From contig NC_086110.1 of the NCBI RefSeq assembly GCF_963921235.1, positions 9,362,001-9,426,000 on the forward strand: 64,000 nucleotides of DNA, in the 5' to 3' direction. This document shows, piece after piece, positions 4,440 through 61,100 of this stretch. The notes under the pieces were generated by a model that saw nothing but the letters and a program-made list of their open reading frames with translations, made no database searches and had not been told where the DNA came from. How positions within the stretch are numbered: position 1 is the first letter of the stretch; each line of letters begins with the position of its first letter. The stretch comes from Mobula hypostoma. Lineage: Eukaryota. The translations under genes and the position numbers were made by a program.

Positions 4440-4726
4440 TGTAGCAGTGTGCTACACACAGCGCTAGAATAACCACACGGAGTCGGTGAGTTAGAGTTGC
4501 GATGAAAGAGATTTATTCAAACTTCGCGGCCTGCTTTTAAAGCCTTCCCATTCCCGCCCTCCCTGGGGCAGGATTGCTGTGGGGAATGCATATTCCCAGA
4601 CCCTTTCCGCGTGCGGGATTTTCCCCCTGCTGGTAAAGATGGCCTGGCGCCCTTTCTGGTGCCGGCCCTCTGCCTACGCGCGCTGTTGTGAGCCGGTTCG
4701 TGTACGCTAGAAAGTGGGTCGCCACA
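4440..4726 (-). repeat. 3' LTR of the CsRn1-type element
   Basis: TGTAGC...GCCACA; about a dozen differences from 8346-8631 by eye. Confidence 0.95.
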
Positions 4727-7101: not shown

Positions 7102-7144
7102 GGGCGTGGAGGGGTGGTCCCTGGGTCTGGATGTGGTGCTGTAC

Positions 7145-23550: not shown

Positions 23551-23935
23551 TGCACCTGCCTGTGCCTGTGTCTGCACCCACCTGTGCCTTAATCTGCTTG
23601 TGCTTGTGGTTGCCACTCTCTTTGCCTGTCTCTCTCTCTCTCAATCTCTCCCTCTCTCACACTCTCTCTCTCTCTTTCTCTCTCTCTGTCTCCCTCTGTA
23701 NNNNNNNNNNNNNNNNNNNNNNNNNNNNNNNNNNNNNNNNNNNNNNNNNNNNNNNNNNNNNNNNNNNNNNNNNNNNNNNNNNNNNNNNNNNNNNNNNNNN
23801 NNNNNNNNNNNNNNNNNNNNNNNNNNNNNNNNNNNNNNNNNNNNNNNNNNNNNNNGTGTTTGTGTCTCTCTCGCTCTCTCTATCTCTGTGTCTCTGTCTC
23901 TCTATGTTGCACTGTCTCTCTGGCTCTCTCGCTCG
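23514..23935. repeat. (TG)n and (CT)n microsatellite tract containing a 155-N assembly gap
   Basis: Direct reading; Ns at 23701-23855. Confidence 0.95.
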
Positions 23936-39180: not shown

Positions 39181-40266
39181 ATGGAGGCTGAGGAATTTAT
39201 AAAGGCGCCGACCTTGGAGGCATTAGAGGATGCCAGGAAATCGGAATTGATAGCTGTGGCCAAACGGTTGAATCTTGCTAAGGTGAAGTCGACAATGAGG
39301 AGAGAGGAGATACACAGAGCTATTGTAGAGCACTATGTATCTAAAAGTGTGTTTCCCCAAGGTGAGCTGGGGTTGGTGTCTATTGAAAAACCTGCTGGAG
39401 ACGCGGTACAGGTGCAGCTTGAAAAACTGAGACTCGAGCACGAGTTCCGGGTACGGCAGTTGGAGCGAGAAGAGAAGCAGTTAGAAAGGCGGGAGAAAGA
39501 GAAAGAGAGAGAAAGACAGTTGGAGAGAGAAGAGAAAGAGAGGGACAGGCAGTTGGAGAGAACGGAAAAACAGAGGGAAAGGGAATTTGAGCTGGAGAAG
39601 TTAAAGATAAGGGCCGAGCAGGGGCTCGTGCCGAACCAAGGTGGAGGGTTCCGGGCGACCCAGGAGGTTAGGCTGGTTCCCCCATTTGACGATACCGACG
39701 TGGATCGGTACTTTCTCCACTTCGAAAAAGTGGATATAAGTCAGGACTGGCCGAGGGATAAGTGGGCTGTGTTACTTCAGAGTGTACTGAAAGGGAAAGC
39801 CCAACAAGCTTACTCAGCTTTGTCCGCGGAAGATGCCCAGAGGTATGAGGTGGTGAAAGAGGTCATCCTCAGGATTTATGAGTTGGTCCCGGAGGCATAC
39901 CGGCAGAGGTTCCGGAATGCGAGGAAACAGTGGGACCGCAGGTATTTGGAGTTTGCCCGTGAGATGCAGACATATTGTGAGCGTTGGTGCGCCTTGAAGG
40001 GGGTAGAGGGGGATTATGACAGACTGCTACAACTGATCCTGATTGAGCAGTTTAAAGGTTGTGTCCCTGAGGGTATGAGACCCTACCTCGATGAGAAAGA
40101 GGCAACCACGTTAGCCGCAACTGCTAAGTTAGCGGATGAGTATGCGTTGACGCATAAAATGAAGTTTGCCCCGAGTAAAGGCTACCAAAAGGGTCATCAG
40201 GACGGCGGGGAGAGCCGCCGGAAAAGTCAGAAAGTAAGCCGGGGACTAGTGAAAAGGATAAGGTAG
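39181..40266 (+). CDS. Gmr1-like Gag (SCAN-like capsid); zinc knuckle lies in a shifted frame
   Basis: 361-aa ORF with E/R-rich coiled coil and RLVPPF..WPRDKWAVLLQSVLKGKAQQAY..PEAYRQRFR; CYNCGKVGHFASRC at about 40305-40345 out of frame. Confidence 0.75.
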   Translation: MEAEEFIKAPTLEALEDARKSELIAVAKRLNLAKVKSTMRREEIHRAIVEHYVSKSVFPQGELGLVSIEKPAGDAVQVQLEKLRLEHEFRVRQLEREEKQLERREKEKERERQLEREEKERDRQLERTEKQREREFELEKLKIRAEQGLVPNQGGGFRATQEVRLVPPFDDTDVDRYFLHFEKVDISQDWPRDKWAVLLQSVLKGKAQQAYSALSAEDAQRYEVVKEVILRIYELVPEAYRQRFRNARKQWDRRYLEFAREMQTYCERWCALKGVEGDYDRLLQLILIEQFKGCVPEGMRPYLDEKEATTLAATAKLADEYALTHKMKFAPSKGYQKGHQDGGESRRKSQKVSRGLVKRIR

Positions 40267-40314
40267 ACCGGGAGCAGTCTGGGAGGAAGTCCCCTGGGGT
40301 CGTCTGTTATAATT

Positions 40315-42015
40315 GTGGGAAAGTCGGACACTTTGCGTCCAGGTGCTTTGCCCCAAGGAAAGGAAAGACGGGGGTTCCGACTGGCTGTATTGAGCCGGCA
40401 AACCCACCCCCAAGGGGGAGGAGGTCTGATAAAGTTCAGGAAGGGCGCGAGGTTTATCTCGGCCGGATTGGTGTCAGTGAAGGAGGGGTTAAAACCAGTT
40501 CCAGTGCGGATCTGGAGAGACACGGGAGTGTGTCAGTCACTAATACTGAAGAGTGTATTAGAGTTTAGCTCAGAGACCCAGACTGGGGAGGTAGAGGTCA
40601 AAGGCGGTGGGGAAGGGACAGAGTCAGTCCCTTTGCACCAGATACACTTACAAAGCAACCTGGTCTCTGGACTAGTCACGATCGGGGTGAGGTCCGAATT
40701 ACCGATGAAAGGCGTGGAAGTCTTGCTCGGTAATGACATCGCCGGAGGAATCGTGTTCCCAGTCGTGAGATTGACAGGTCAGCCTGCCAGCATTGAGGCC
40801 CCGCCCATGGACTCACGGGTTCATCACGGGCCCGCGATAGTGAATTTAGCTGAAACGTTTCTGCCAACCTTGTATGAGACGGGGTGTAGTGAGACAAGAG
40901 GTAGTGAGGGAGCTGGGACGGACGTAGCAGTAGCCAGGAAAGAATTTGTGCAGACGCAGGAGCGAGACGAGGGTCTGACGGTTTTGGCAGAGACAGCTCT
41001 CTCTGACACAGCTTTAACAAGGGAACTAGTAGGCTATTGTGTGGAGGAGGAAGTGCTAAGGAAAAAAGGGAAATCAAGTACAGTACCCGCAGATGAGGAA
41101 TGGGGGTTGGTGCAAAAGAGTTATGGGGATGAGGTTTTTAACATGGCCCGCGAGGTACCCCCCGGTGGACATGTTGCGGTGCTGGAGGAAACAGTTGGTG
41201 GAATCATGAAAGAGATTTACCGACTGCCCAGGGGGAAGAATGTTATTGATCATGACCGACTATCAAACCTAGTCGGTGTTAGCGTGGAAATCAATGAAGC
41301 TAGGGGCCCCCTGATAAGAGGAAAAAACCATTTTGAAAAAATTAGTATGGGATCGATCAGATGGGAGAAGGCTATTGTTTTGGCCAGGTCTACTGATAAG
41401 GTCTCTCCCTTAATCCCCAAACAAAGCGAATCTTTAGAAGAAGTAATTAAACGACTCGCACCCGTGTGTTTGATTGTCCCGAGGCAATGCAAAGAACTGG
41501 GACGTTGGGTGATGTCTGTTACAATAGGGTAACCTAGTAAACAACACTCATATATAATGAGTAATTCAGTGACTAAAGGGCTGATGAACACAGAGGTGTG
41601 TATTGGCAATTTAATACGGCTGTCTGAAGCCAGCTTGATAGTGAACCTTGAAAAAAATGAATTCGGCCACACGAAGGTCACTTACCTGGGAATTGTGGTG
41701 ACACAGGGGCAGCTGGCAGCGATGCAAGCTACAGTGCAGGCTATCGCTGACCTCCCAACCCCGACAGACAAGAGGGCCCTCAGAAGGCTCTTGGAGATGG
41801 TGGGGTACTGCAGGAAGTTTTGCAATAACTCTGCGGTCAATACCCGTCCCCCTCCTACTAAGCCCTTGCGAGAGAAAACTGAGTCAGAATGGGACGACCC
41901 TTGTTATTGTGGTCCGGGACAAAACCAAATGAGAGGTTACATTGGTCGCAATTCATCAGTGTTTTTGGCCACTATGAAGTTTGCTGAGTTGGAGCCTGGT
42001 CTAAGGGATTATTAA
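40315..42015 (+). pseudogene. Degenerate pol (protease DTG, integrase Zn-finger remnant, RT thumb remnant)
   Basis: RIWRDTGVCQS; LVQKSYGDEVFNMAREVPPGGH; expected YxDD position reads CIGN; LGIVV..AIADLPTPTDKRALRRLLEMVGYCRKFC; no integrase DDE core or RNase H seen. Confidence 0.7.
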
Positions 42016-43760: not shown

Positions 43761-45141
43761 ATTTTAAAAGTTTTTGATAATTTTTGAAGAGGTGTTTAAG
43801 TGATACAAGTGAAGGAAGGAGGTGAAAGAGTCATTTCAGGAACATTAAAAGCTTTAGTCTTTTTATTTCATATTTTAAATGATAGTAGAGATTTGCTGGG
43901 GTAGTGTGGCTTAAAGGCCTGGAGAGACTGTATCACTAAATGCAAGTATCCAAAGATCAGTAGAGAGGACAATGTGTTTTAATTTACTGTGTTTGACTGC
44001 AATCCCACACTCCTTTATTTTGTGATTTATTTATATTAATTAAATTTTGAAGCAATGAGAGCCAGAGTTTCACAATGGTTATTGTGCAATTCTGGTTAAT
44101 GTTGTGAAATATGAGAATTTCAAATTCCCTATACAAGATACACACCAATTCAAGACAAATAGCAACTTGTATTTTAATTGCATGATGTGAAAAAGTTTGA
44201 AGCAATTACTACTTCAAACTTTTTCATAACATGCAATTAAAATATAAGTTGCTATTTAATTTACTATAATTTCATTGCTACAGTAATGAAGATAGTTAAT
44301 CCTCGGGTGAACATGTCGTTTTAGGCATTCAGTTGGATCTTGCAGGAAAGTTGATTGGTGGAAGAGGTACAGGGCTGGAGAAGCCCTCCCTGCACCTTTT
44401 AAATCTACTCCTCATCTCTTCAAAGGGTCTTGGCCCGAATCATTGACTGTATTTTTCTATAGATGCTTCTCGACCTGCTGAATTCCTCCAGCCTTTTGTG
44501 TTCCCTTCTCCAGCCCTGTATCTCTTTCACCGATCAACTTCCCAACTCTTCACTTCATCAATCAACTTCCCAATTCTTCACTTCATCCCTCCCCCTCCCA
44601 CCACTGCCTCTCGATTATTTCTCTTCACTCTTCGTTGCGAAATACGTTTGCTTAAACTTGCAAATCAGATAATTTTCACCCGGTGAAGCTCGCGGAAATT
44701 ATGTACAAACGCTGCACGCTATCCGGTTTACCGAGGATGTTTAAAGCCCCTCGGTGTAAGTGTGTGCTTTATCTGCACAGGCACGGGAGCCTGCTCATCA
44801 CTGAGCTGAAGAACAGAAAGCTGCGGACTGACAGAATTCACTGCCTCCACCCGGACAGCCCTGTTCTTATTACCTCGTCGCACACATCTCAATTTTTTTT
44901 AAATTTCTTTGAAATGGGCCGGATCAGCATTTCAAACATTTGCAGCTTTCAACTGACGCTTGTGGGTATTGAAACCGCAAGGCTCCAAGGTTGACATTTG
45001 GTTTCGGTTGTACATTGCATTAACACGCCACTAAAAATAATACTCCGTTTCTCCACCGATATCCCCCACCCCCAACAAGCATATACACGCGAAAAACAGC
45101 GCACGGTCCGTTGTCTCACCGGTCCTCAATTGCGAAAGTCT

Positions 45142-45205
45142 ATGTTCAGCATGTTTGGAAGAAACGAATTTAACCCCTTCTTCATCTTGGCCGTTGTTTG
45201 CACAG
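45142..45205 (+). CDS. IgSF receptor exon 1: leader peptide (phase 1)
   Basis: MFSMFGRNEFNPFFILAVVCT then ACAG|GTATT donor; joins the V exon in frame. An alternative ATG lies at 45151. Confidence 0.7.
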
Positions 45206-45455
45206 GTATTCTTTAAAAATTCTTTGCAGAAGAAAGTTGCGAATTACCATTTATGTAATTGATTAAGTAGTTAATTATTTAATTAAATCTCCTTTTACGA
45301 TTGAATTCATAGTGGTTCGTTCTCTGGAGGGTATCCGTTCCTCTGGTGTCTGTAATTTGCCAGTTTCAGGGAATTGTTAGGATCACCTGAGCGACTGGAA
45401 TGGTTGCTGTTGTCTCGAATTTACATTCATCTTTTGTTTCCATTTACCCTTACAG

Positions 45456-45767
45456 CGTTCATCGAGGCTCCTGAAGTGTTTCAATATCCGGAAAAAATCG
45501 AAACGTTGGTGGGACAGGATGCGAAATTTCAGTGCGCGTTCCCACTATTTCAAGATAAATCTAAAATCAGGGTCTACTGGTGGAAAGATAGAGAACGGGA
45601 ATTCTTCAAAGAGGGACAAGATCGCAGGAAACGTTTTGTTGTGGAAACTAAAGCGAACGTGTTGTTTCAGCTTGGGAACGTGAGGCGCAGTGATGCCGGG
45701 TTCTATTACTGCAGAGTGGAGGGTGAATTCACTGGAAATGGAACAGGCACAAAGCTCATTGTATGGG
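45456..45767 (+). CDS. IgSF receptor exon 2: germline-joined VJ-type V domain
   Basis: TTTACCCTTACAG acceptor, G|GTGAGC donor; canonical Cys (FQCAF), Trp (VYWWK), DAGFYYC and J-like GTGTKLIV in a single exon. Confidence 0.92.
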
Positions 45768-48700
45768 GTGAGCGATTAATCTCGATGACTTGCGGTTGCA
45801 TCTGTGTTTAGAAACCGGGGTCAGGGAGATGGGGAACTGGAGCAGTGTATAGTTGAGCGGGGTGGGGGTAAAGAACAAGCGGATGAAACGAGTTTTCGCT
45901 TTAGGTTTTCACTTATGGCTCATATAGTACACACAAAGGATGATCAGTGTCAGGCAGAACGTTATTGACAGTGACAGGGGCTCCGAATGTGTATTCGGTA
46001 GCATATACTTTTACCATGGTAGAGCGTAGTTTTTAATCCAATAAAATCTGGGGGAATCTGCCAAAAAAAAAGGACTACCGGTGGGGCATCTCGTTCTAAT
46101 TCCTCTCCAATTCTACAAGGCATCGGCTGAGCAGTTATTTCAAAATAATTTCTTGAACCAATTTGCATTTTTAAAGTGTATGTCGCAATCTATTGTGTTT
46201 TGTTGTCGCAAAGTCTTAATGTGAAATGTAATAAACATGTCCCAGTATTCATCCCCACCAGTGAAATTACTAATGCCCCCCAGCTTTCGATATTTCTTTA
46301 AAAGCCAGTACTTGCGGTTTTATATAGGACTCCGCAGCGCGGATGCAGAATAATCGGCCAGATTTTTAAAATCTAGACAGCCCATCACAAGATTTCTTCA
46401 CAGACAAATTTGAAATGTTTTATTTTCATACGGCTTTGATTTGTTTGCTGCATTTCGGAGAAAAGAAAACGCAGTTTGTATTGTTAGAGCAACCTTTAAA
46501 ATTGACGGTTGAGTAAACTAAGCTGAGGGAAAACGGCAATGCGAGTTATTGATGTATATCGCTATACTATCAACGCTCTTAATAATATTCCTGGATCGGG
46601 AGAGTGGAATATTCACTCTCAAACATACAAGAGTAGAATTTCTCAGCACATATACCTGTTAAATTTTCCCTCGGATGTACTCCCAGAACAATCAAGCGTG
46701 CAAATGGGTGTGTTAACGGGAAAAACACTTTGCACGATCTTCAGTTAATGTTCTTCATGTGTTATCAGTCGGTGTTATCAGGTTGACAAGAAATATTAGC
46801 GAAACTATTAATTGAAACAATCTGTATTGAGCGTATCCGTAGACAAGCCGCCTTCATTTATTTCTGATGCTAACAACCGAATAGCAACCGGCCGTTCGGA
46901 TACTTTGCACAGTCTTTGAAATTAAACGTTCTTCCCCAACCACCTGGCTGTATCGCAGATGTGCTTCTCTGTAGCTTAGTTGTTTCTGAAGTGGAGCAAT
47001 TTTGACCACAGTATTGTGCAAAAGGCGTAATGTTGGTTTATTTCGATTGAAAATATTTCGTTTCCCAGTTTCTTACAAAATCAAATTACGAACCGAACCG
47101 AGGGCACTTTAGGATTACGTAATAAAATGCATTGGATGTATCTAAATATTTTCAAAGGTAAACTCCGACATCAGGGTTGTAAATTTAAGCAATTGCACCT
47201 TGAACCATGTTACAAAAATATTTTGATATGCGCTGGTGATGCGCTGTAACTTCAGCGTAACGTCAATCAATGATTTTTCAAAGGGAACGGTGAATGAATG
47301 CTTCCCGTTACAACTGGTCTCACCTGATCAGGATCCATTCCTGTGCTCTTACTTGATTAGCCCCAAATCTAAATAACAAATCCTTCGATCACGGAAAAAT
47401 GAAAAATTCCATTTAGAATGGGATTAATATTTGAAGCTTGTAACGTACCCACACCTTTCCCTCCCCATCTGCCAAACTGATCCAAGTCCAAATGTTCACC
47501 TCGTTTTCATGTTTTAAAATTTGTGGCTTGTGGAGGAATTCTTTGAATGAGGAATGCCAACCAATGATGGACAACACGATAAATATCATTTCTGGACATC
47601 TGAGTTTTAATCGTAATTTGAATCGTCTCATCGGTCATTCAGGAGTGTATATCTTATATAAATTATGATCTGTAACATGATTCCCCTCAAAAAGGAACGT
47701 GGGTAATTACTGGTGTCTTTTCTAGCAGTTTTCCAATGCCGTTATTGTTTGAGGTGTTGGCACAGTTTAAAAGTACTGGCGTTGGCCAAAGGTTAAATCG
47801 GCCTTGTTATAAAATGCAAGGGATGTAAGGGATTTCATACAAAGTATTCTCTTAGCCTTATCACTTTCTCAAAAACAAATCCTCTAGCCCTGTATTCAAC
47901 TGACAAGCTATCCTTTGCAGACAGTAGGCGCATATTGTGTAATTAAAGAGCGCTTCATATTTCGAAAATACATGAATTTATCCCATTGAGTTCTCTGTCA
48001 AAACGTTCTACCCTTGAATACCATTCTATGACTTTAGATAAATTGCTTATAATTGCATTGATTTGTTTTCAACCTGAATGGTTTTAACTTTTTTGACAGC
48101 GGATGCAGCAGAATAAATGCACAGCCCAAGTTCGTGATTAAAGGATGTTAACTATTAGAAATGGGTTTGGTGTGGGATTAAAGAAAGGGTGTAAAAGGAA
48201 GCGGAAGCTATGAGGGATTGGAATTAAGAAAAAAAAACATTCCTGCGAGTAAAGACCCTGTCGTCTAAATAATCCCGACAGACATTTTCCCACATTACAA
48301 AATACTATTTAGCTCTATAATGTAAGTTATGCATTGGTGCGAGTTATTGCTTAATGAAACTGTACCTTTCTATCATTCACAAAGGATAGTTTAAATTGAA
48401 TGCAGCGCTTGTCTGCTTTCTTACGGCTGCACTGTTGGTCCTGAGCTATTTACCTTGCAATTTATGGATTTGACTTGAAGCCTCAGTACCATCTGGAAGC
48501 ATCATGCACGAATTTTACTTGACTGGAAGTAAAGATCATTCGGAACCATAACATCTTTACCATTATTTAACCTAATTTCATTCCATAAAATCATTAATTT
48601 ATTTTGATACATATTGTGGAAATTTGCTTTGTATTTTAAAGCTTCCATTAATGTTGCAAAGCTTGTTCACTGCTCAAGCTCTGCTTTAACAAGGATGTAA

Positions 48701-49141
48701 ATGTTAACTGACAATGATAAAGGTATTTTCTGGGTGAATGGCAGCTGCCTGTTTTTAAATGTATACACTATTTAATTTTTAAAGAGAGCAAAAAAGTACA
48801 AGAAAAACATAATTGGAATTTATATTGCACAACTTTCTAAACATTCAAGTTAATTGTCATCTGAATTCCTGTTCTGTTGAAAGTTTCCTGTTGAGTATAC
48901 TCCTGATTAAGCTACTGCACACAAGTAATGATATATTTAATAAATATATGATGATATAATAAATGTATTTCATCAACAGATCCATTAAGTTTGGATTGGG
49001 TATGTAAAACAATGTGGGGTTGGGCTGTGCCAATCTGGTTGAGAGCTTCATCAGGGTCAGGCACATTACTTTATTGTGTGTATTCATTCTCCTGATTGAA
49101 AACATTATATGAGCTGGCAAAAGTGTCCTTCTTTCTTTCGC

Positions 49142-49372
49142 AAACAACAGGAATTCTGCAGATGCTGGAAATTCAAGCAACATACATCAAAGTTGCTGGT
49201 GAACGCAGCAGGCCAGGCAGCATCTCTAGGAAGAGGTACAGTCGACGTTTCAGGCCAAGACCCTTCCTTCAGTTAGTCCTGACGAAGGGTCTCGGCCTGA
49301 AACGTCGACTGTACCTCTTCCTTGAGATGCTGCCTGGCCTGCTGCGTTCACCAGCAACTTTGATGTATGTTG
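49142..49372. mobile_element. 231-bp fold-back Penelope pLTR unit
   Basis: 14-bp TSD CTTCTTTCTTTCGC (49128-49141, 49373-49386); 92-nt inverted arms (49175-49266 / 49284-49375) with 2 mismatches and a 17-nt spacer. Confidence 0.9.
49275..49310 (+). ncRNA. Minimal type I hammerhead ribozyme motif, intact core
   Basis: AGTC-CTGACGA-A-GGG TCTCGG CCT-GAAA-CGTC-GACT: helix I AGTC/GACT, GUC site, loopless palindromic ACGT helix III. Confidence 0.72.
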
Positions 49373-49757
49373 CTTCTTTCTTTCGCTACCTTTCAGCAAA
49401 TGGGTCTTAAAGTGTCCCTGTGAGTGGTGTAGACAAAAGTAAAGTACTCAAGTTTATATTGGACTTGAATTCATCATGGTTGGGTCAGAATTAAATTTTA
49501 TATAAAAGCTGAACTTTCCATCGTAGACCAGAATCCAATAAATCTGGACAGTTATATTTTTGTATATGGTGTTTTTAGATTACTATGATGAAATATTCTG
49601 TTGTTCATGAATAAACAGAAGCCAATAATTATGGAGGAATGAAATATGAGGAAAATAGGAAGTATCATTAAACAAAGCTTAATAGAATATATGACTTCAC
49701 ACTTTGTATCCAACATTAATATCAAACTATATCCTTTTACATTCAAACTTCCTACAG

Positions 49758-50045
49758 GTTCCCCAGAGCCTTTGAAGATTTCTCAAACGCAGCCTGCAGA
49801 TGGTTCTCTATGGTGTAACACATCTGGTTTCTATCCTCCTGAGTACATCTTATCTTGGTATAAAAATGGTCAAGAAGTTATGAACAAAGAAGATATTAAA
49901 CATCAAACAATGGATAATCTAACTGTAGTTTCCAGTCTTTTGAAAGAGAGACAGCCTGCTCAGCATGGAACTGTTTATGAATGTAAGGTGTCTCACTCCA
50001 GCCTCAGTGTTCCAGCTTTGGCCAATTATACTGTCAACATTGATG
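49758..50045 (+). CDS. IgSF receptor exon 3: C1-set domain
   Basis: CTTCCTACAG acceptor, G|GTAAG donor; LWCNTSGFYP, LSWYKNG, YECKVSHSSL C1 signatures; phase 1-1. Confidence 0.92.
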
Positions 50046-50689
50046 GTAAGACCATTACTTTTTTGGTGTGATTCAATTTGTATGGTCAAATACTTTTCCC
50101 TGTTTTTTTTTCATCGTAATAATACTTAGAAGGCAGTGAGTTCAATCTGAGTCTTCTGGGAGTGCTTTTGGTTGATAACCAGTTGCTGCTAGGCTCAGGG
50201 TTCAGCTTCTTAATACTACCTAAAGTCTATTTGGTAAATTGGCTCTTGCTGATGTACTTTTGCATAGTTGTTTTAAGTTCCATGATCTTCCATTTAATTA
50301 AAAACAGATGATGAAATCACTCAACAGTACAGGCAGCATCCCTGAACAGAGAAACTGAGTTAATAATAGTCACTAATCTGAAATCTTTTCTGCATTTTCT
50401 GTTTTTATTTCAAATTTATAGCATATGAAGTCTTTTAATTTAATTTTCTACCAGAGGAAATCTCTTATCTCTACAGACCAGCATATTTCCTGTAACTTTG
50501 CAAATTGTTCTACACTACATGCTTATCCATTTAATTTTTTGAAGGGTTCAGCGTAGCTTGCTTCCATTACATCAGCAGGCAGTGCATTCTGCAGTCCAAC
50601 CTCTCACTGCTTAACCAACTTGTTCGTAACCCATGCTGGATGAAGTTGAAGTAGACAAAACAATAAAAATATTACCCCAATAGGCTTCA

Positions 50690-51861
50690 AACAACATGAA
50701 TTCTGCAGATGCTGGAAATTCAAGCAACACACATCAAAGTTGCTGGTGAACGCAGCAGGCCAAGCAGCATCTCTAGGAAGAGGCGCAGTCGACGTTTCAG
50801 GCCGAGACCCTTCGTCAGGACTAACTGAAGGAAGAGTGAGTAAGGGATTTGAAAGCTGGAGGGGGAGGGGGAGATCCAAAATGATAGGAGAAGACAGGAG
50901 GGGGAGGGATGGAGCCGAGAGCTGGACAGGTGATAGGCAGAAGGGGATACGAGAGGATCATGGGACAGGAGGTCCGGGAAGAAAGACGGGGGGGGGGTGA
51001 CCCAGAGGATGGGCAAGAGGTATATTCAGAGGGACAGAGGGAGAAAAAGGAGAGTGAGAGAAAGAATGTGTGCATAAAAAAGAGTAACAGATGGGGTACG
51101 AGGGGGAGGTGGGGCCTAGCGGAAGTTAGAGAAGTCCATGTTCATGCCATCAGGTTGGAGGCTACCCAGGCGGAATATAAGGTGTTGTTCCTCCAACCTG
51201 AGTGTGGCTTCATCTTTACAGTAGAGGAGGCCGTGGATAGACATGTCAGAATGGGAATGGGATGTGGAATTAAAATGTGTGGCCACTGGGAGATCCTGCT
51301 TTCTCTGGCGGACAGAGCGTAGATGTTCAGCAAAGCGGTCTCCCAGTCTGCGTTGGGTCTCACCAATATATAAAAGGCCACATCGGGAGCACCGGACGCA
51401 GTATATCACCCTAGTCGACTCACAGGTGAAGTGATGCCTCACCTGGAAGGACTGTTTGGGGCCCTGAATGGTGGTAAGGGAGGAAGTGTAAGGGCATGTG
51501 TAGCACATGTTCCGCTTACACGGATAAGTGCCAGGAGGGAGATCAGTGGGGAGGGATGGGGGGGACGAATGGACAAGGGAGTTGTGTAGGGAGCGATCCC
51601 TGCGGAATGCAGAGAGAGGGGGGGAGGGAAAGATATGCTTAGTGGTGGGATCCCGTTGGAGGTGGCGGAAGTTACGGAGAATAATATGTTGGACCCGGAG
51701 GCTGGTGGGGTGGTAGGTGAGGACCAGAGGAACCCTATTCCTAGTGGGGTGGTGGGAGGATGGAGTGAGAGCAGATGTACGTGAAATGGGGGAGATGCGT
51801 TTAAGAGCAGAGTTGATAGTGGAGGAAGGGAAGCCCCTTTCTTTAAAAAATGAAGACATCT
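50690..51861 (-). mobile_element. 5'-truncated Penelope-like element with GIY-YIG ORF and pLTR
   Basis: 13-bp TSD CCAATAGGCTTCA (50677-50689, 51862-51874); 249-codon open frame with VIYCVRCSRCGLLYIGETQRRLGDRFAEH. Confidence 0.92.
50787..50822 (-). ncRNA. Minimal type I hammerhead ribozyme motif, intact core
   Basis: Exact reverse complement of the motif at 49275-49310. Confidence 0.72.
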
Positions 51862-52089
51862 CCAATAGGCTTCATTGTGACAAATAGTTAACTCAGCTGC
51901 ATCTAACTGGAACCATAATCGGATGTCCCCTTATTGCTCCAAAGTCTCTCACTTGGGTTCTCAGATGATGAATAATGAGGACTACAATATAGCATTGACA
52001 TGATAAGTACAGGATGGTAATTTTTGAAGATTATGGTCATTGGAAAGAAAATTAAATAATCCCTTCATCGGTTTAATTCGTCAAGTTTA

Positions 52090-53490
52090 TTGCCATTTTG
52101 ACCATAAGCTGCTGGTACAGTACACAGTAAAAACTAAGCAACATTCCTCCAGGACCCTGGTGCTACATGAAACAACACAAAACTACACTAGACTATGTGA
52201 GACAGCACAAGGCTACACTAAACTACGTAAAACAACATAAAAACTGCACTAGCCTACAGACCTCTACATAAAGTGCACAAAACAGTGCAGGGCAGTAAAT
52301 AATTAATAAACAAGACAATAGACACAGTAGAGGACAAATTACAATATAATAATAAATGATGTAGATATCAGTCTAGACTCTGAGTATTGAGGAGTCTGAT
52401 GGCTTGGGGGAAGAAACTGTTGCACAGTCTGGTCATGAGAGCCCCAATGCTTCGGTACCTTTTGCCAGATGGCAGGAGGGAGAAGTGTTTGTGTGAGGGG
52501 TGCGTGGGCTCCTTCACAATATTGTTCACTTTGCGGGTGCAGCATGTGGTGTAAATGTCTGTAATAGTGTGAAGAGAGACCCCGATGATCTTCCCAGCTG
52601 ACCTCACTATCCGCTGCAGGGTCTTGCAATCCGAGACGGTGCAATTCCCGAACCAGGCAGTGATGCAGCTGCTCAGGATGCTCTCCATACATCCCCTGTA
52701 GAATGTGGTGAGGATGGGGGGTGGGAGATGGACTTTTCTCAGCCTTTGCAGAAAGTAGAGACGCCGCTGTGCTTTCTCAACTATGGGGCTGGTGTTGAGG
52801 GACCAGGTGAGATTCTCCACCAGGTGAACACCAAGAAACTTGGTGCTCTTAACGATCTCAACGGAGGAGCCGTCAATGTTCAGTGGAGAGTGGTCGCTCC
52901 GTGCTCTCCTGAAGTCAACAACCATCTCTTTTGTTTTGTTCACATTCAGAGACAGGTTGTTGGCTCTGTACCAGTTTGTTAGCCGCTGCACCTCCTTGTA
53001 TGCTGACTCGTCATTCTTGCTGATCAGACCCACCATGGTCGTGTCATCGGTGAACTTGATGATGTGATTCGAGCTGTGTATTGCTGCACAGTTGTGGGTC
53101 AGCAAGGTGAACAGCAGTGGACTGAACACACAGCCCTGGGGAGCCCCCGTGCTCAGTGTGATGGTGTTGGAGATGCTGCTCCCAATCCGGACTGACTGAG
53201 GTCTCCCAATCAGGAAGACTAGGGTTCAGTTGCAGAGGGAGGTGTTCAGGTCCAGCAGTTTCAGCTTTCCAGTTAGGTGCTGAGGAATTATTGTGTTGAA
53301 TGCTGAACTGAAGTCTATTAACAGCATTCGGACGTATGTTTCTTTTTTGTCCAGGTGGAGGGTGGTGGTGATGGTGTCGTCTGTTGAGCAGTTGGGATGA
53401 TACATGAACTGCAGGGGGTCCAGTGAGAGGGGCAGCAGGGTCTTTATGTGCCTCATGACGAGCCTCTTGAAACATTTCATGATGATGGAA
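52090..53490 (-). mobile_element. Rex1/Babar-type LINE 3' part (RT)
   Basis: ORF 52368-53129 [21 protein letters not shown]; [11 protein letters not shown] upstream; short-repeat 3' UTR. Confidence 0.88.
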
Positions 53491-54329
53491 GTGATTCTTT
53501 AGTTAAAAATAATGAGATCTAATTCTAGATCCTTTCAACTTCCATCCTGTCAAGACCTCTCAAGATCTTATATTTATTTATCAGGTCCTTTCTCATTCAG
53601 GAGAACTCTAGCAGATACAAGCCAGTCTGTCCAACCCTTCCTCATAATTCAGCCAGTACTGTACCCAGTCCTCCCAAACAATGTTCTATTCTAAACTGAG
53701 AAAAATCTTCCTATTTTTGTATCTACACACATACTGCTGGAGTAACTCAGCAGTTCAAGCAGCATCTATGGAGAGGAATAAAGAGTCGATGTCTCGGCCT
53801 GAAATATCAGCTCTTTATTCTTCTCCATGAATGCTCCCTGACCTGTCGAGTTTTATAGTATTTTGAGTGTTACTCTTGATTTCGAACATCTGTAGAACCT
53901 CTTGTGTTTATTTCTGTATTTAGTTTCTCCAGTAATAAAATGCAACATTCTAATTAGATCTACTAATTACTTTCTCTGACTGCATACTAGCCTTTTGCAG
54001 TTCATGCACCAGGAGGACACCGAGGATTCCTTGTGGGACAGAACCCTACTACTTATTTCTATTTGTTTAATATATATTTATGCTTTCTCTACTGGAATCA
54101 GGGTTGTTTTATGCCTTTTCAAGTTGATGTAAGAACTTTCAGTGAATTTTTGAAAACACTAGGTTAGTTGCCCAGTGCCTTAGCCACATTAATAAAATTG
54201 ATCATATATTTAATTGCTTGAAAATTATGTATGAAAATTGACTACCATTTTCGTCACATTCGTCACATTAAAACAATTTAAAATTCTATCATTAGCTAAC
54301 ATGATGACTTTTCACTATGCTGAGTAAAG

Positions 54330-55650
54330 TTCAAAAAATAAATTTATTGTCAAGGTCCATATATGTCATCATATGCAACCCCAAGATTCATTTTCTTGCA
54401 GACATGCTCAATAAATTGAATAATCATAATAGAATCAATGAACGACTGCATCAGCTGGGCATACCATCATGGTGCAAAGGACAACAGAAATTTGTAAATA
54501 CAAAAAGAAAAAATAATAACAATTATAATAATAAATAAATTAGCAATAAATATTGAGAAGATAAGATGAAGAGTCCCTGAAAGTGAGTCCATATGTTGTG
54601 GAAACATTCCAGTGATGGGACAAGTGAGATTGAGTAAAGTTATCTCCTTCGTCTTAAGAACCTGATGGTCGAGGGGTAGTAACTGCTCCTGAACCTGGTG
54701 GTGTGAGTCCCAAGGCACCTATACCTTTTTCCTGATGGCAGTAGTGAGAAGAAAGCATGACCTGGGTGGCGGGGGTCCCTGATGATGGATGTTGCTTTCC
54801 TACAACAAATCTCCATGGTGGGGAGGGCTTTACCCGTGATGGCCTGGGCTGTATCTACTACTTTTTCGGTCAAGGGGATTAGTGTTTCCATACCAAACTG
54901 TGATGCAGCCCATCAGTATATTCTCCGCTATATATCTATAGAAGTTTGTCAGAGTTTTAGATGTCATATTGAGTCCTTACAAATTCCTAAGGAAGCAGAG
55001 GTGCTACCATGCTTTCTTCATAATTGCACTTGTGTGCTGGGTCCAGGACAGGTTCTCTGAAAAGATAACACCAGGGGATTTAAAGTTGCTGATCCTCTCT
55101 ATCTGTAATTCTCCAATAAGGCCTGGCTTATGGACGTGAGGTTTCCTCTTCCTCAAGTCAATAATTAGCTTCTTGGTCTTGCTGATTTTGTGTAAGATTT
55201 GTTGTTCTGGCACCATTCAGCCAGATTTTCAGTCTCCTTCCTATATAGTAATTTATTAACACCTTTGTTTTGGCCAATGATAGTGGTGTGGTATTGTCAG
55301 CAAACTTGCATATGGCATTGGAGCTGTGCTTAGCCTCAGAGTCATAAGTGTACAGTGATTAGAGCAGGAGGCTAAGCACACAGCCTTGTTATGCATCTTG
55401 CTGATAGAGATTGTGGAGGAGATGTTGTTGCCAATCTGAACTGACTGGGGTCTGCAAGTGAGGAGATAGAAGATCCAATTGCACGAGGAGATATCAAGGC
55501 CAAGGTCTTGAAGCTTATTGATTAGTGGGATGACTGTATTGAATGCTGAACTGTAGTTGATAAAGGGCATCCTGATGTATGCATCTTTGCTGTCCAGATA
55601 TTCCAGGGTTGAGGGAAGAGCCAATGAGATAGCATCTGCTGTGGACCTGT
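54330..55650 (-). mobile_element. Older Rex1/Babar-type LINE fragment
   Basis: [21 protein letters not shown] and [12 protein letters not shown] remnants. Confidence 0.75.
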
Positions 55651-56369
55651 TGTGGGAATATTATAATTAAGGTGATAATTGTGCTTTTGATTAATAGTCA
55701 TCTATTGAGGAGCAGCATGTAAAATCCTAAGCAGAGATATTTCCACTTGAGTTTGAATATGGGAACAGAGATACAAGATAAGGAATGATCATTTAAATCT
55801 GATGTTGAAGTTTTTTTTATTACAGTGGATGGTGTCTTTCTGGAATTCACTCAGGAAGGGATGAGAAGGCTAGATCACTGGAGATATCTGAGGAGGAGGT
55901 GGATGATATTTTGAAAAATCAGAGAATTAAGGCCATTATTGTACTGATACAGAAGAAGAATTGTGAATGGAATAACATGACAGGCTTTTGGGGCTAGATG
56001 ACCCAATCATTCTAATTTCTTATGTTCTCATGTATTTTGTATATACCAAGATAAAGAGCAGCTGGACTAAGATGCATCATTTTGAGAGTTCAAGGGTAAA
56101 GGTTTACTCGCTTCCACATTCCAATTGGTTGTAATTTTCTACCAATGTTTCCATAATTTCTTTAAAAATAGAAGATTTGGCAAAATGTTGCCACTATGGC
56201 AAATGTTTTGTTATTTTATTTACAATTTATTATTACATAGAAAAAAGTATGTAAAGCATGGGAATAGCTCCTTCAGCTCACAATGTTGTGCTGAACCAAT
56301 TAAATTAGTAATTAAACAGCCAACCTAACTAATCCCCTCTCCTTCACAATGTCCATATAGTTCTATTTT

Positions 56370-57177
56370 GCCCTTACACTTCCTCCCTTACCACCATTCA
56401 GGGCCCCAAACAGTCCTTCCAGGTGAGGCATCACTTCACCTGTGAGTCGACTGGGGTGATATACTGCGTCCGGTGCTCCCGATGTGGCCTTTTATATATT
56501 GGTGAGACCCGACGCAGACTGGGAGACCGCTTCGCTGAACATCTACACTCTGTCCACCAGAGAAAGCAGGATCTCCCAGTGGCCACACATTTTAATTCCA
56601 CATCCCATTCCCATTCTGACATGTCTATCCACGGCCTCCTCTACTGTAAAGATGAAGCCACACTCAGGTTGGAGGAACAACACCTTATATTCCGTATGGG
56701 TAGCCTCCAACCTGATGGCATGAACATTGACTTCTCTAACTTCCGCTAGGCCCCACCTCCCCCTCGTACCCCATCTGTTACTCTTTTTTTATGCACACAT
56801 TCTTTCTCTCACTCTCCTTTTTCTCCCTCTGTCCCTCTGAATATACCTCTTGCCCATCCTCTGGGTCACCCCCCCCCCGTCTTTCTTCCCGGACCTCCTG
56901 TCCCATGATCCTCTCGTATCCCCTTCTGCCTATCACCTGTCCAGCTCTCGGCTCCATCCCTCCCCCTCCTGTCTTCTCCTATCATTTTGGATCTCCCCCT
57001 CCCCCTCCAGCTTTCAAATCCCTTACTCACTCTTCCTTCAGTTAGTCCTGACGAAGGGTCTCGGCCTGAAACGTCGACTGCGCCTCTTCCTATAGATGCT
57101 GCCTGGCCTGCTGAGTTCACCAGCAATTTTGATGTGTGTTGCTTGAATTTCCAGCATCTGCAGAATTCCTGTTGTTT
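56370..57177 (+). mobile_element. 5'-truncated Penelope-like element, near-identical to 50690-51490 but inverted
   Basis: 12-bp TSD TAGTTCTATTTT (56358-56369, 57178-57189); GIY-YIG ORF 56423-56749. Confidence 0.92.
57044..57079 (+). ncRNA. Minimal type I hammerhead ribozyme motif, intact core
   Basis: Identical 36-mer to 49275-49310. Confidence 0.72.
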
Positions 57178-57194
57178 TAGTTCTATTTTCTTCA

Positions 57195-57880
57195 CATTCA
57201 TGTGCCTATCTAAACATCTCTGGTGCTGTCTGTGCAGAGTTTGCAGAGTCTTTCTCTAATTGCATGCGTTTCCTCTGGGCATATTCCAGTATCCTCCCAC
57301 ATTCTAAAGAGGTGCAGGATGGTAGGTCAAATGACAATGGGAAATGACTTCTGTTGTGTAAATGAGTGGGAGAATCTTGGGTGGGGGAATTTGGGGAAAT
57401 AAAATGTGAGTAGGGTAGATACAGTTGATGGGTGGTTGGTGTGAACTTTGGATGAAGGACCAACCACCCATCATACATCCTGTATGATTCAATGAACTGA
57501 GGGCATAATATGCTTTTTTTATTTGCCCCTCATTGCCAGCCTTGTACTTCCATTCTTTGAGATCAATCATACACATCGAGCACAGAAAGTGGCCCTTTGG
57601 CTCAATGAGACAGTCAATCCTCTGGCATCCAATTACATTAATCCCATATTTTACATTCCTCTCAACCGCAGCCCCATCCCCAACCACCACTTGCTTACAC
57701 TCTAGATCAATGTACGGTAATTAGTAAACCTAACAACCTGCATATCCTTGTGGTGTGGGAGGAAAGTGGAACACCTGAGAAAAGCTTATTGGTCATAGAG
57801 AAACTGTGCAAACAACATACAGTCAGCATGATGGTTTAGGATTGACTCCGAGTCTCTGGAGCTGAACCATAGGAACACTG
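57195..57880. mobile_element. Two old V-SINE fragments (plus ~57195-57400, minus ~57700-57880)
   Basis: Decayed V-domain GTTTCCTCTGGGCATATTCCAGTATCCTCCCACATTCTAAAGAGGTGC and a reverse-complement equivalent. Confidence 0.55.
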
Positions 57881-58203
57881 CTGGTTGCAATGTTGTATTG
57901 ACCTTTAACATGGATTACAAATCCTCACCTAACTCTTGAAATGTTTTGAGCTACATCAAGCAAGAACCTGACTGAGATTTTAAAGCTGATGAGGTAAATT
58001 CTTTTTGAATGAGACCTCATTGTGCTAACATTTATCTTCCATAAATAAGATGTCAGTTTGACCATTAGTGCTTTTGCTGCACAGGAAACTTAAATTCATA
58101 ATACATATACTTTGTGTAGAGCTCTCAGAAATTGGTGACCTCCTGATTCATTTGCATGAGAGAATGCGTGACTTCATTTCTCCTTTTTGTATCTGCTTTC
58201 CAG

Positions 58204-58314
58204 ACACCAGCAACATTTTCCATCTTCCCTGGTGGATTTATCTTTGTGGAGGAATTCTTGTACTGCTTTTGATTTTTTTAACAATACTATGCTATAAATT
58301 ACGTAAGCACAAAG
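58204..58314 (+). CDS. IgSF receptor exon 4: stalk, transmembrane helix and basic stop-transfer
   Basis: TCTGCTTTCCAG acceptor, AAG|GTAAGA donor, phase 1-1; DTSNIFHLPWWIYLCGGILVLLLIFLTILCYKLRKHK. Linkage to the C1 exon is inferred; only repeats were recognised in between. Confidence 0.75.
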
Positions 58315-58789
58315 GTAAGAAACAATCTCTTTTCAATGAGACTATGTTTATATCATTCAAGAATTTAGTGAATTAACCATTCCGTTATTATGGGCTTCAG
58401 CATCAACATTTTGATTTATGTGACTTTTTTCCCTCATGAGCTGCTCAAAGTAAAAGAGAATGTAAATTGGATACATCCATGACAAACACTGGGTTTTCAG
58501 ATTAGGTGAGGGATATTTAAAGGCAAAGTGTCCAGTGTATCAACGGCTCTCAGACATTTCCTGGTATTTGGAGAGAGCTGAATTGATGAAGGTTTGCTTC
58601 TGTGATCAGAATCAGAACCAGAATCAGGTTTAACATCACCGGCATATGTCGTGAAATTTGTTAACTTTACTTCAGCAGTACAATGAAATGCATGATAAAC
58701 AAATATAGAGGAAAAAAGCAATAGCAGTAAGTATTTATATGTCTATTAAATAGTTAAGTTAAAATTAGTGCAAAAAAAAACAGAAATAA

Positions 58790-61100
58790 AAAGGATTCAG
58801 CAGTGGCTGGATGGGAGACGCCAGAGAGTAGTGGTGGATAACCGTTTGTCAGATTGGAGGCCGGTGACTAGTGGTGTGCCTCAGGGTTCTGTACTGGGTC
58901 CAATGTTGTTCGTCATATATATTAATGATCTGGATGATGAGGTGGTAAATTGGATTAGTAAGTATGCAGATGATACTAAGGTAGGTGGAGTTGTGGATAA
59001 TGAAGTAGGTTTTCAAAGCTTGCAGAGAGATTTAGGCCAGTTAGAAGAGTGGACTGAAAGATGGCAGATGGAGTTTAATGCTGAGAATTGTGAGGTGCTA
59101 CATTTTGGTTGGACTAATCAAAATAGGACATACATGGCAAATAGTAGGGCATTGAAGAATGCAGTAGAACAGAGGGATCTAGGAATAATGGTGCATAGTT
59201 CCCTGAAGGTGGAATTTTCTGTCGATAGGGTGGTGAAGATAACTTTTGGTATGCTGGCCTTTATAAATCAGAGCATTGAGTATAGGAGTTGGGATGTAAT
59301 GTTGAAATTGTATAAGGCATTGGTGAGGCCAAATTTGGAGTATTGTGTACAGTTCTGGTCACCGAATTATAGGAAAGATGTCAATAAGACATGAATTAGC
59401 TAAGATAGATTGGCAAATGATAATTAAAGGGTTGATGGTGGATATGTAATGGCAAGCATTTAAAGATCGCATGGATGAACTACAACAATTGTTCATCCCA
59501 GTTTGGCAAAAGAATAAACCAGCGATGGTAGTGCACCTGTGGCTGACAAGGGAAATTAGGGATAGTATCAATTCGAAAGAAGAAACATACAAATTAGCCA
59601 GAAAAAGCAACACACCTGAGGACTGGGAGAAATTCAGAGTCCAGCAGAGGAGGACAAAAGGCTTAATTAAGAAAGGGGAAAAAAGGTTGAGAGTAAGCTG
59701 GCAGGGAATATAAAAACTGACTGTAAAAGCTTTTATAGATATGTAAAAAGAAAAAGATTGGTTAAGACAAATGTAGGTCCCTTACAGTCAGAAACAGGTG
59801 AATTGATCATGGGGAACAAGGACATGGCAGACCAATTGAATAACTACTTTGGTTCTGTCTTCACTAAGGAGGACATAAATAATCTTAAGGAAATAGTAGG
59901 GGATCGAGGGTCTAGTGAGATGGAGGAACTGAGGGAAATACATGTTAGTAGAGAAGTAGTGTTAGGTAAATTGAAGGGATTAACTGCAGATAAATCTCCA
60001 GGGCCAGATGTTCTGCATCCCAGAGTGCTTAAGGAAGTAGCCCAAGAATAGTGGATGCATTAGTGATCATTTTTCAGAACTCTTTAAATTCTGGATTAAT
60101 TCATGAAGATTGGAGGGTGGCTAATGTAACCCCACTTTTTAAAAAAGCGGGGAGATAAACCAAGGAATTATAGACTGGTTAGTCTAACATCAGTGGTGGG
60201 GAAAATGCTAGAGTCATTTATCAAAGATGTGATAACAGCACATTAGGAAAGAGGTAAAATCATCGGACAAAGTCAGCATGGATTTGTGAAAGGAAAATCA
60301 TGTCTGACGAATCTTATAGAATTTTTTGAGGATGTAACTAGTAGAGTGGATGGGAGTGGATGTGGTATATTTGGATTTTCAGAAGGCTTTTGACAAGGTC
60401 CCACACAGGAGATTAGTGAGGCCAATTCATCGGCTATATTTAAGAGGGAGTTAGATATGGCCCTTGTCGCTAAAGGGATCGGGGGTATGGAGAGAAGGCA
60501 GGTACAGGGTTCTGAGTTGGATGGCCAGCCATGATCATACTGAATGGCGGTGCAGGCTCGAAGGACCGAATGGCCTACTCCTGCTCCTATTTTCTATGTT
60601 TCTAATAAAATTGAGAGAGTACAGAGGAGATCTACAAAAATGTTGCCTGGGTTCATCTCCTAAGTTACAGAGAAAGGTTGAACAAATTAGGTCTTTATTC
60701 TTTGGAGCACAGACGGTTGAGGGGGGACTTGATAGAGATATTTAAAATTATGAGGGGGATAGATAGAGTTGACGTGGATAGGCTTTTTCCATTGAAAGTG
60801 GGGGAGATTCAAACAAGAGGACATGAGTTGAGAATTAAAGGGCAAAAGTTTAGGGGTAACATGAGGGGGAACTTCTTTACTCAGAGAGTGGTAGCTGTGT
60901 GGAACGAGCTTCCAGCAGAAGTGGTTGAGGCAGGTTTGATGTTGTCATTTAATGTTAAATTGGACAGCTATATGGACAGGAAAGGAATGGAGGGTTATGG
61001 GCTGAGTGCGGGTCGGTGGTTCTAGGTAAGAGTTCGGCACGGACTAGAAGGGCCAAGGTGACCTGTTTCCGTGCTGTAATTGTTATATGTTATATGGTTA
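58790..61100 (+). mobile_element. CR1 LINE 3' part split by a second CR1
   Basis: RT ORF 58768-59394 (YADD) resumes at 60604 (KIERVQRR); AATAA duplicated at 59383-59387 and 60604-60608. Confidence 0.85.
59388..60603 (+). mobile_element. Internally deleted CR1 nested in CR1
   Basis: Linker and RT N-part to [11 protein letters not shown], then a jump near 60418 directly to the 3' UTR and TTTCTATGTTTCT tail. Confidence 0.8.

Follow-up and report, generated by a model that had tools for sequence, protein, structure and literature searches.

The window analysed here, a stretch of 64,000 nucleotides of the devil ray Mobula hypostoma (contig NC_086110.1, positions 9,362,001 to 9,426,000 of the forward strand; this contig of the devil-ray genome is called C55 below), carries on its plus strand a gene for a receptor of the immunoglobulin superfamily (IgSF), in which a germline-joined V domain of the VJ type is followed by one C1-set domain. 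Taken as a whole, the locus is in our view likely to represent an intact, transcribed gene of five exons, the product of which is a type I membrane glycoprotein of 324 residues. It is a new addition, so far uncharacterised, to the known class of non-rearranging VJ-C1 IgSF receptors, and is found in RefSeq under a misleading automatic name.

Gene structure, transcripts and product

The gene consists of the following parts, given in window coordinates unless stated otherwise:

45100-45141, plus strand: 5' untranslated region, minimum extent; covered by transcript contigs, which reach 24-266 letters further 5'.
45142-45205, plus strand: exon 1, 64 nt; start codon and the larger part of the signal peptide (the leader is split); GT donor, phase 1 end.
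45456-45767, plus strand: exon 2, 312 nt; end of the leader and germline-joined VJ-type V domain (Pfam V-set, E 1.2e-9).
49758-50045, plus strand: exon 3, 288 nt; C1-set domain (Pfam C1-set, E 5.8e-11).
58204-58314, plus strand: exon 4, 111 nt; stalk, transmembrane (TM) helix and juxtamembrane KLRKHK; GT donor, phase 1 end.
C55:9430449-9430648, equivalent to window positions 68449-68648 (locus L020): exon 5, 66 codons and stop; AG acceptor in phase 1, TGA stop.

Exons 1 to 4, when joined, comprise 775 nt and give 258 open codons from the ATG at 45142. The internal borders are all of the AG...GT type, and from the exon lengths of 64, 312, 288 and 111 nt it follows that all introns are in phase 1. 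In the orthologs, translation starts at the counterpart of a second ATG, located at 45151. The frame of these four exons contains no stop codon since exon 4 ends in a GT donor (AAAG followed by gtaag). The fifth exon lies ~10 kb downstream of exon 4 and thus ~4.4 kb past the end of the window. The RefSeq protein P0156 ("butyrophilin-like protein 10 [Mobula hypostoma]") is identical over the 258 residues and continues for 66 more; it was reached by a word search, after an exhaustive HMMER search with the V exon and name look-ups of full-length relatives. The complete product of 324 aa is therefore composed of a split leader, the V and C1 domains, a stalk of 9 residues, the TM segment and a tail of 72 residues.

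Transcripts were sought in four public runs of one study (X1-X4, 89-241 million letters each), in each of which all sampled words of the V exon are present. When laid on positions 45100-51099, contigs of X1, X2 and X4 (1.5-3.6 kb) run from 45100-45205 to 45456-45767 and on to 49758-50045, departing from the genome exactly at 50045. In X3 the joints 45205/45456 and 45767/49758 are also present, on separate short contigs. Both joints show GT..AG ends and no letter of the exons differs across the contigs of the four samples. None of the runs is recorded as RNA; their RNA status rests on the spliced contigs, which indicate that the runs contain cDNA. The junctions 50045/58204 and 58314/68449 rest on the identity to P0156 and on the collinear orthologs, not on reads.

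In the transcript contigs, two intronic segments flanking the C1 exon (49139-49367 and 50717-51075) reach a word depth of 10^4-10^5; loose ends are numerous there, and joints connect the two segments, in one case on opposite strands. Both resemble copies of a transcribed repeat of very high copy number, similar to a short interspersed nuclear element (SINE), which would account for the enormous depth at 49.1-49.4 and 50.7-51.1 kb.

The V exon holds an FPLF motif in the BC loop, a WWK motif, an NGT sequon and the F-G end YYCRVEGEFTGNGTGTKLIV, and it includes a J-like G strand of the GxGTxLxV type (GTGTKLIV). Recombination signal sequences (RSS) were searched for as heptamer-spacer-nonamer arrangements with at most 1 mismatch in the heptamer, at most 2 in the nonamer and a spacer of 12 or 23 +/-1, and none was found on either strand of 44000-59000 (0.16 expected in shuffles). 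The C1 exon contains the motifs C..SGFYP and YECKVSH as well as the sequons NTS, NLT and NYT, and its best PDB matches are IgG CH3, MR1 alpha3 and UrIg2. As in the general class of non-rearranging VJ-C1 IgSF receptors, V and a J-like G strand are thus placed in one exon free of RSS, and the second domain is a true C1-set domain, the profile of which matches immunoglobulin heavy-chain (IgH) constant domains and UrIg2. Neither the introns nor the rest of the window contain a further Ig-like open reading frame (ORF), and the RefSeq product likewise has a single C1.

The TM segment PWWIYLCGGILVLLLIFLTILCY contains no K, R, D or E and starts with a conserved PWWIYLC (PWWIYxC motif). The cytoplasmic tail is basic and rich in K, R and H; it lacks tyrosine and carries an invariant CxRC and a KKH(R/H)KK motif. 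AlphaFold2, run on the alignment of the orthologs, models V and C1 as folded domains (predicted local distance difference test, pLDDT, about 70-89 by 10-residue block), residues 231-261 as the TM helix and the tail as disordered.

The automatic names given to the gene and its orthologs in RefSeq (BTNL10, NCR3LG1-like, CD276) would make it a ligand of the B7/butyrophilin family, and in Foldseek searches against Swiss-Prot models BTNL9, CD80, BTN3A, PD-L1 and CD276 indeed rank first. These scores are however indistinguishable from those of Ig light chains, T-cell receptor (TCR) chains and UrIg2 in PDB; more generally, Foldseek (Swiss-Prot models and PDB) and the ESM Atlas did not discriminate among B7/butyrophilin, Ig light-chain, TCR, SIRP-like and UrIg2 folds. 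The canonical J-like G strand in V also speaks against such a ligand, as does the second domain, which scores 43 bits with the Pfam C1-set model (E 5.8e-11) versus 18 bits with the CD80-like C2-set_2 (2.4e-3) and 14 bits with the butyrophilin C2-set_3 (0.045). No SPRY/B30.2 domain is present in the product. Membership of the B7/butyrophilin family can therefore be given very little credence.

An initial annotation of this locus, made from the sequence alone, had proposed four exons with AG/GT sites, phase 1 throughout and a frame of 258 open codons, a germline-joined V-J free of RSS, a true C1-set domain with C..SGFYP and YECKVSH, and the four sequons NGT, NTS, NLT and NYT. All of this was reproduced. 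Two of the three junctions that it had put forward for a check in RNA, 45205/45456 and 45767/49758, are seen in contigs of the four runs. As a model of the whole gene, however, the four exons fell short, since the cytoplasmic exon 5 was missing.

Orthologs and conserved surfaces

Proteins of 321-327 aa and of the same layout occur in Hemitrygon, Hypanus, Pristis (sawfish), Heptranchias (a six-gill relative), Carcharodon, Heterodontus, Chiloscyllium, Hemiscyllium and Stegostoma. The orthologs of the stingrays Hemitrygon and Hypanus show 83-84% identity overall and 76-77% in the V exon. For Narcine (electric ray) a partial model of 240 aa exists, and for Callorhinchus (elephant shark, a chimaera) an isoform of 285 aa that lacks the TM; an exact-product look-up for the elephant-shark ortholog gave no match. 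Automatic names of the orthologs are discordant, including B7H6-like (NCR3LG1-like), SIRP-alpha-like, lambda light chain-like, tapasin-related, CD276 and BTNL10, suggesting that the orthologs are uncharacterised. The initial annotation had named one-to-one orthology with an already characterised receptor as a finding that would contradict it; clear orthologs do exist, and no characterised one was found among them.

Word-indexed protein searches with the family profile and with TM and tail yielded nothing outside the chondrichthyans, or no more than the two closest orthologs, and are too insensitive to prove absence elsewhere. Among the V domains from outside cartilaginous fish whose names were looked up, the nearest belong to a frog "NCR3" that has VJ domains in tandem, to a frog SIRP-like protein and to reptile pIgR-like proteins, all of them far weaker matches.

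The TM exon is missing from RefSeq isoforms of three sharks (horn shark, bamboo shark and Heptranchias) and of the elephant shark (P0162, P0163, P0170 and P0008). In these isoforms exactly the 37-38 residues of the TM exon are absent and the basic tail is kept. This exact loss makes it likely, as far as isoform sequences can tell, that a soluble form arises by skipping of the TM exon and that this form is old. An isoform of the sawfish (P0002) ends after the V exon by read-through into the intron.

Among 12 aligned sequences, the invariant positions of the V domain include P51-L52, W63-W64-K65 and the stretch of Y105, Y106, C107, R108, V109 and G111, followed by G115, N116, G117, T118, G119, L122 and V124; the F strand and the FG/G segment are thus close to invariant. 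The core of the C1 domain is invariant too, as are C267, R269, C270 and H314 of the tail. At the start of the TM, at least 90% of the sequences keep P230-W231-W232-I233-Y234 and C236, this motif falling short of invariance because the elephant-shark isoform has no TM. When conservation is scored by segment, the F strand (0.93), the FG loop (0.81), the G strand (0.80) and the BC loop (0.76) rank highest, and the stalk (0.42) and the A strand (0.51) rank lowest, with 0.66 for the D-E region. The loops equivalent to complementarity-determining regions 1 and 3 (CDR1 and CDR3) are thus more conserved than the framework, which is the opposite of what is seen in antigen receptors and in fast-evolving natural killer receptors, and this argues for one conserved ligand at the CDR1/CDR3-equivalent face.

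A receptor cluster on C55 and its relation to other VJ genes

The gene is not a lone relic but belongs to a cluster of about 35 VJ-C1 genes on C55. In the devil-ray genome its V exon has 36 relatives at 29-42% identity and its C1 exon has 33, all on C55, where they form clusters at 0.41-0.99, 9.24-9.76, 12.84-13.83 and 16.25 Mb. Approximately 30 V exons are followed on the same strand by a C1 exon at most 15 kb downstream, two of them by two C1 exons. A profile of the family yielded 38 strong V matches, again all on C55. Many of the cartilaginous-fish relatives have tails with motifs resembling the immunoreceptor tyrosine-based inhibitory motif (ITIM), such as LTYAAL, VTYAAL and similar ones, and others are short-tailed with R or K in the TM; such a mixture is the hallmark of a family of paired receptors, inhibitory and activating. 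Among the relatives compared, only the ortholog group has the CxRC tail. In a V-domain tree the ortholog group is a clade with a Shimodaira-Hasegawa-like approximate likelihood ratio (SH-aLRT) of 96, nested within a family clade of chondrichthyan sequences that has 102 rows and a support of 93. The elephant-shark ortholog LOC103185897 is numbered adjacent to a paralog, LOC103185896, suggesting that the embedding in the cluster may be ancient. We therefore think it probable, as part of the same overall description, that the gene is a slowly evolving member, with orthologs from chimaera to ray, of a chondrichthyan multigene family of VJ-C1 receptors.

An isolated V exon on the minus strand at C55:16246850-16247137 (L008) falls inside the clade of orthologs with the CxRC tail and has a different CDR3-equivalent (YYCSVAYERKYYNGTGTELQV). 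No C1 exon was found within 15 kb of it. It could represent a remnant or else a second copy that has diverged.

The family resembles the SIRPs in several respects. Many paralogs and orthologs carry automatic names such as SIRP-alpha-like or SIRP-beta-like, a 'SIRBL' cluster is among the structural neighbours, and in both a VJ-like germline V precedes one or more C1-set domains; in the case of the window gene, this layout is set within a family with ITIM-bearing and charged-TM members, two paralogs of which have two C1 exons. This raises the question of whether the gene belongs to the SIRP family and the C55 cluster is the chondrichthyan counterpart of these paired receptors of VJ-C1-C1 layout. 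The window gene has however one C1 instead of two, it has neither an ITIM nor a charge in the TM, and no closeness to solved SIRP chains was seen, none of them being among the best 60 PDB sequence matches of V, of C1 or of V and C1 together. In addition, genes with a SEP domain, such as NSFL1C, a neighbour of SIRP in humans, are found on contigs C1 and C2 and not on C55, although this is weak evidence. On balance we consider the assignment to SIRP unlikely. The Pfam models of the opioid precursor and of the TCR-alpha constant domain gave no match anywhere in the genome.

The V domain is also of the type found in NKp30 (NCR3), a receptor with a TM arginine for adaptors bearing the immunoreceptor tyrosine-based activation motif (ITAM) and with a gene in the major histocompatibility complex (MHC). 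Both have a non-rearranging VJ-type V with an F-G region of the form YxCRVE...GNGT.L.V, including an N-glycan sequon in the G strand, and the end YYCRVEGEFTGNGTGTKLIV does resemble the ..VCRVEVLGLGVGTGNGTRLVV of human NKp30, as the initial annotation had noticed. NKp30 is the best single-domain full-length PDB match of the V exon (E 3.5e-5), and some isoforms are automatically named NCR3-like. Accordingly, the gene could be viewed as the NKp30 ortholog of the ray which has retained an ancestral C1 domain.

Several lines of evidence point elsewhere. The window V scores 26.9 bits against human NKp30, which is below the 38 bits obtained with pIgR D5, and for the V exon at C12:15715379-15715687 human NKp30 ranks first in PDB, at E 1.1e-9 and 41.5 bits. 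This latter exon shares with NKp30 an NGT.EF.GR motif and a long end of the form CRV..G.GV..G.G..L.V. C12 carries MHC class I exons at 28-32 Mb, and C15 and C13 have smaller sets of them. The four MHC paralogons are marked by PBX and NOTCH, which are found on C12, C50, C67 and C81; none of all these is on C55, so that the window gene is apart from MHC class I, PBX and NOTCH. Since the V exons with NKp30 as top match are on the MHC contig C12, the NCR3 lineage is placed there and not on C55, which agrees with the MHC linkage of shark NCR3 that has reportedly been published. In the V tree, the C12 exons and frog NCR3 fall outside the family clade. Furthermore, the V exon of the window gene is spliced to the C1-set exon 49758-50045, in contrast to the single-V ectodomain of NKp30, which has no C1, and the product has a TM free of Arg or Lys and a long basic tail.

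Clusters of single-exon, full-length V exons of the VJ type, with weaker matches to the family profile, are found at C12:14.59-14.99 Mb (L022 and L023) and 15.71-16.04 Mb (e.g. L024:5379-5687, minus strand). No C1-like ORF was present within the 10 kb fetched around three of the C12 V exons. Judged by sequence, the real NCR3 family of the devil ray is probably represented by V genes of the kind at 15.7 Mb on C12.

For these reasons an NKp30 ortholog with a retained C1 domain is highly unlikely, and the gene is NKp30-like in V-domain type only. The suggestion of a poorly characterised chondrichthyan VJ-C1 immune receptor with an NKp30-like VJ has thus been upheld as far as an intact, transcribed, non-rearranging gene with nothing but discordant automatic names is concerned; an NKp30 lineage was not supported, with 26.9 bits for the window V against about 41 for the C12 V exons and with a gene located off the MHC contig.

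Similarity to the rearranging antigen receptors has to be considered as well, since elasmobranchs have germline-joined members of Ig light-chain and TCR clusters. The window gene shares with these chains the layout of leader, intron, VJ and C1, including the split leader, its Foldseek scores equal those of Fab light chains and TCR beta, and some orthologs are automatically named lambda light chain-like. It differs from them by the lack of RSS and of rearrangement, by a sequence that is identical in the four samples, by a CDR3-equivalent that is invariant across species and by a TM exon and conserved cytoplasmic tail of its own. Its neighbours, moreover, form a cluster of receptors with ITIMs or a charged TM. 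We thus give next to no weight to an origin from such a cluster.

UrIg, which has VJ and three C domains, is secreted and encoded in MHC class III, and UrIg2, which has VJ and nine or more C domains, is encoded in the Ig/TCR complex (PMC12227049). These non-rearranging shark genes resemble the window gene in that VJ occupies one exon, the leader is split, the C1 domains are true ones and the distribution is restricted to cartilaginous fish. The C1 profile matches the UrIg2 chain (9dmx) at E 7.8e-24, about as well as it matches IgH constant domains. Whole-chain E-values of PDB profile searches are dominated by multi-domain chains (titin, ROBO, antibodies), and only the single-sequence comparison with NKp30 is usable. 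The window gene differs from UrIg and UrIg2 in that it has one C1 and is situated in a multigene receptor cluster on C55.

The chicken PRARPs and the VJ-C1 genes of the Xenopus MHC paralogon are also non-rearranging, and passages of PMC10751288 discuss them as remnants of antigen-receptor precursors; the same passages cite VJ genes, including PRARP, in the MHC and link some tetrapod VJ-C1 genes to MHC paralogous regions. Going by these descriptions, they are VJ-C1 membrane proteins like the product of the window gene, and differ from it in that the latter is encoded on a contig free of PBX and NOTCH.

The other long ORFs of the window are retroelement remains and not genes. On the minus strand, positions 4517-8365 contain ORFs of an LTR (long terminal repeat) retroelement, one with RNase H and integrase (428 aa) and one that is gag-like with an aspartyl protease (406 aa, DUF7041). 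On the plus strand, positions 39181-41532 contain two adjacent ORFs of 361 and 405 aa, the first with a SCAN domain (E 7e-13, gag-derived) and the second free of Pfam matches; located ~4 kb upstream of the receptor gene, they are probably another retroelement or a domesticated gag-like gene. Reverse-transcriptase fragments of the LINE (long interspersed nuclear element) type are found on both strands at 9476-10387, 17604-18461, 25124-25987, 30852-31682, 52368-53129 and 58768-59394; introns 3 and 4 of the receptor gene contain two of these. An assembly gap is present at 23701-23855.

Proposed function and evolutionary meaning

The proposed role of the product is germline-encoded recognition, exerted at the cell surface and, where the TM exon is skipped, probably by a soluble form as well. 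Its ligand would be a single conserved one, probably endogenous, contacted by the face of the V domain that is equivalent to CDR1/CDR3. Signalling through ITIMs or ITAM adaptors would not be possible; any signal would have to be relayed by the conserved motif of the TM and by the CxRC/polybasic tail, through palmitoylation, metal-bridged binding of a partner or contact with membrane lipids. Alternatively, the protein might serve as a counter-structure for other receptors.

Some points weigh against this picture of the gene. The RNA nature of the four runs is a guess, although their contigs are spliced. Conserved CDR-like loops are also compatible with a purely structural or chaperone-like role. 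A homodimer prediction with two copies of the V-C1 ectodomain gave a score of 0.00, which is not evidence either way. The analysis establishes anatomy, expression, orthology and family setting; what is said on ligand, signalling and cell type is inference. Finally, the orthogroup may already have been described under another name among the shark NCR3-family genes of Kinlein et al. 2021; a search of the open literature found no paper that gives the domain layout of shark NCR3 genes.

A two-domain precursor of VJ and C1 is predicted in the legend to Fig. 2 of PMC12227049. It is tempting to ask whether the orthogroup is a surviving minimal two-domain VJ-C1 membrane receptor, with the layout that present models put at the root of Ig, TCR and UrIg, but we regard this as decidedly improbable. 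If it were true, the receptor would have stayed nearly unchanged since before the split of holocephalans and elasmobranchs by recognising a conserved self ligand, and the paired-receptor family as well as the MHC-linked NCR3 genes would be diversified offshoots of the orthogroup.

The finding extends a known class instead of revealing a new one. What it adds is a minimal layout of VJ, one C1 and TM which is conserved across the three chondrichthyan lineages sampled and has an invariant CDR3-equivalent, a tail unlike the known ITIM or ITAM systems, and a large paired-receptor cluster off the MHC. Public labels for this cluster are inconsistent (BTNL10, B7H6-like, SIRP-like, lambda-like and tapasin-like), and its separation from the true MHC-linked NCR3 genes corrects the annotation and gives a defined orthogroup for work on ligand and expression. 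Non-rearranging VJ-C1 genes such as this one are comparative material on the type of gene into which the RAG transposon inserted.

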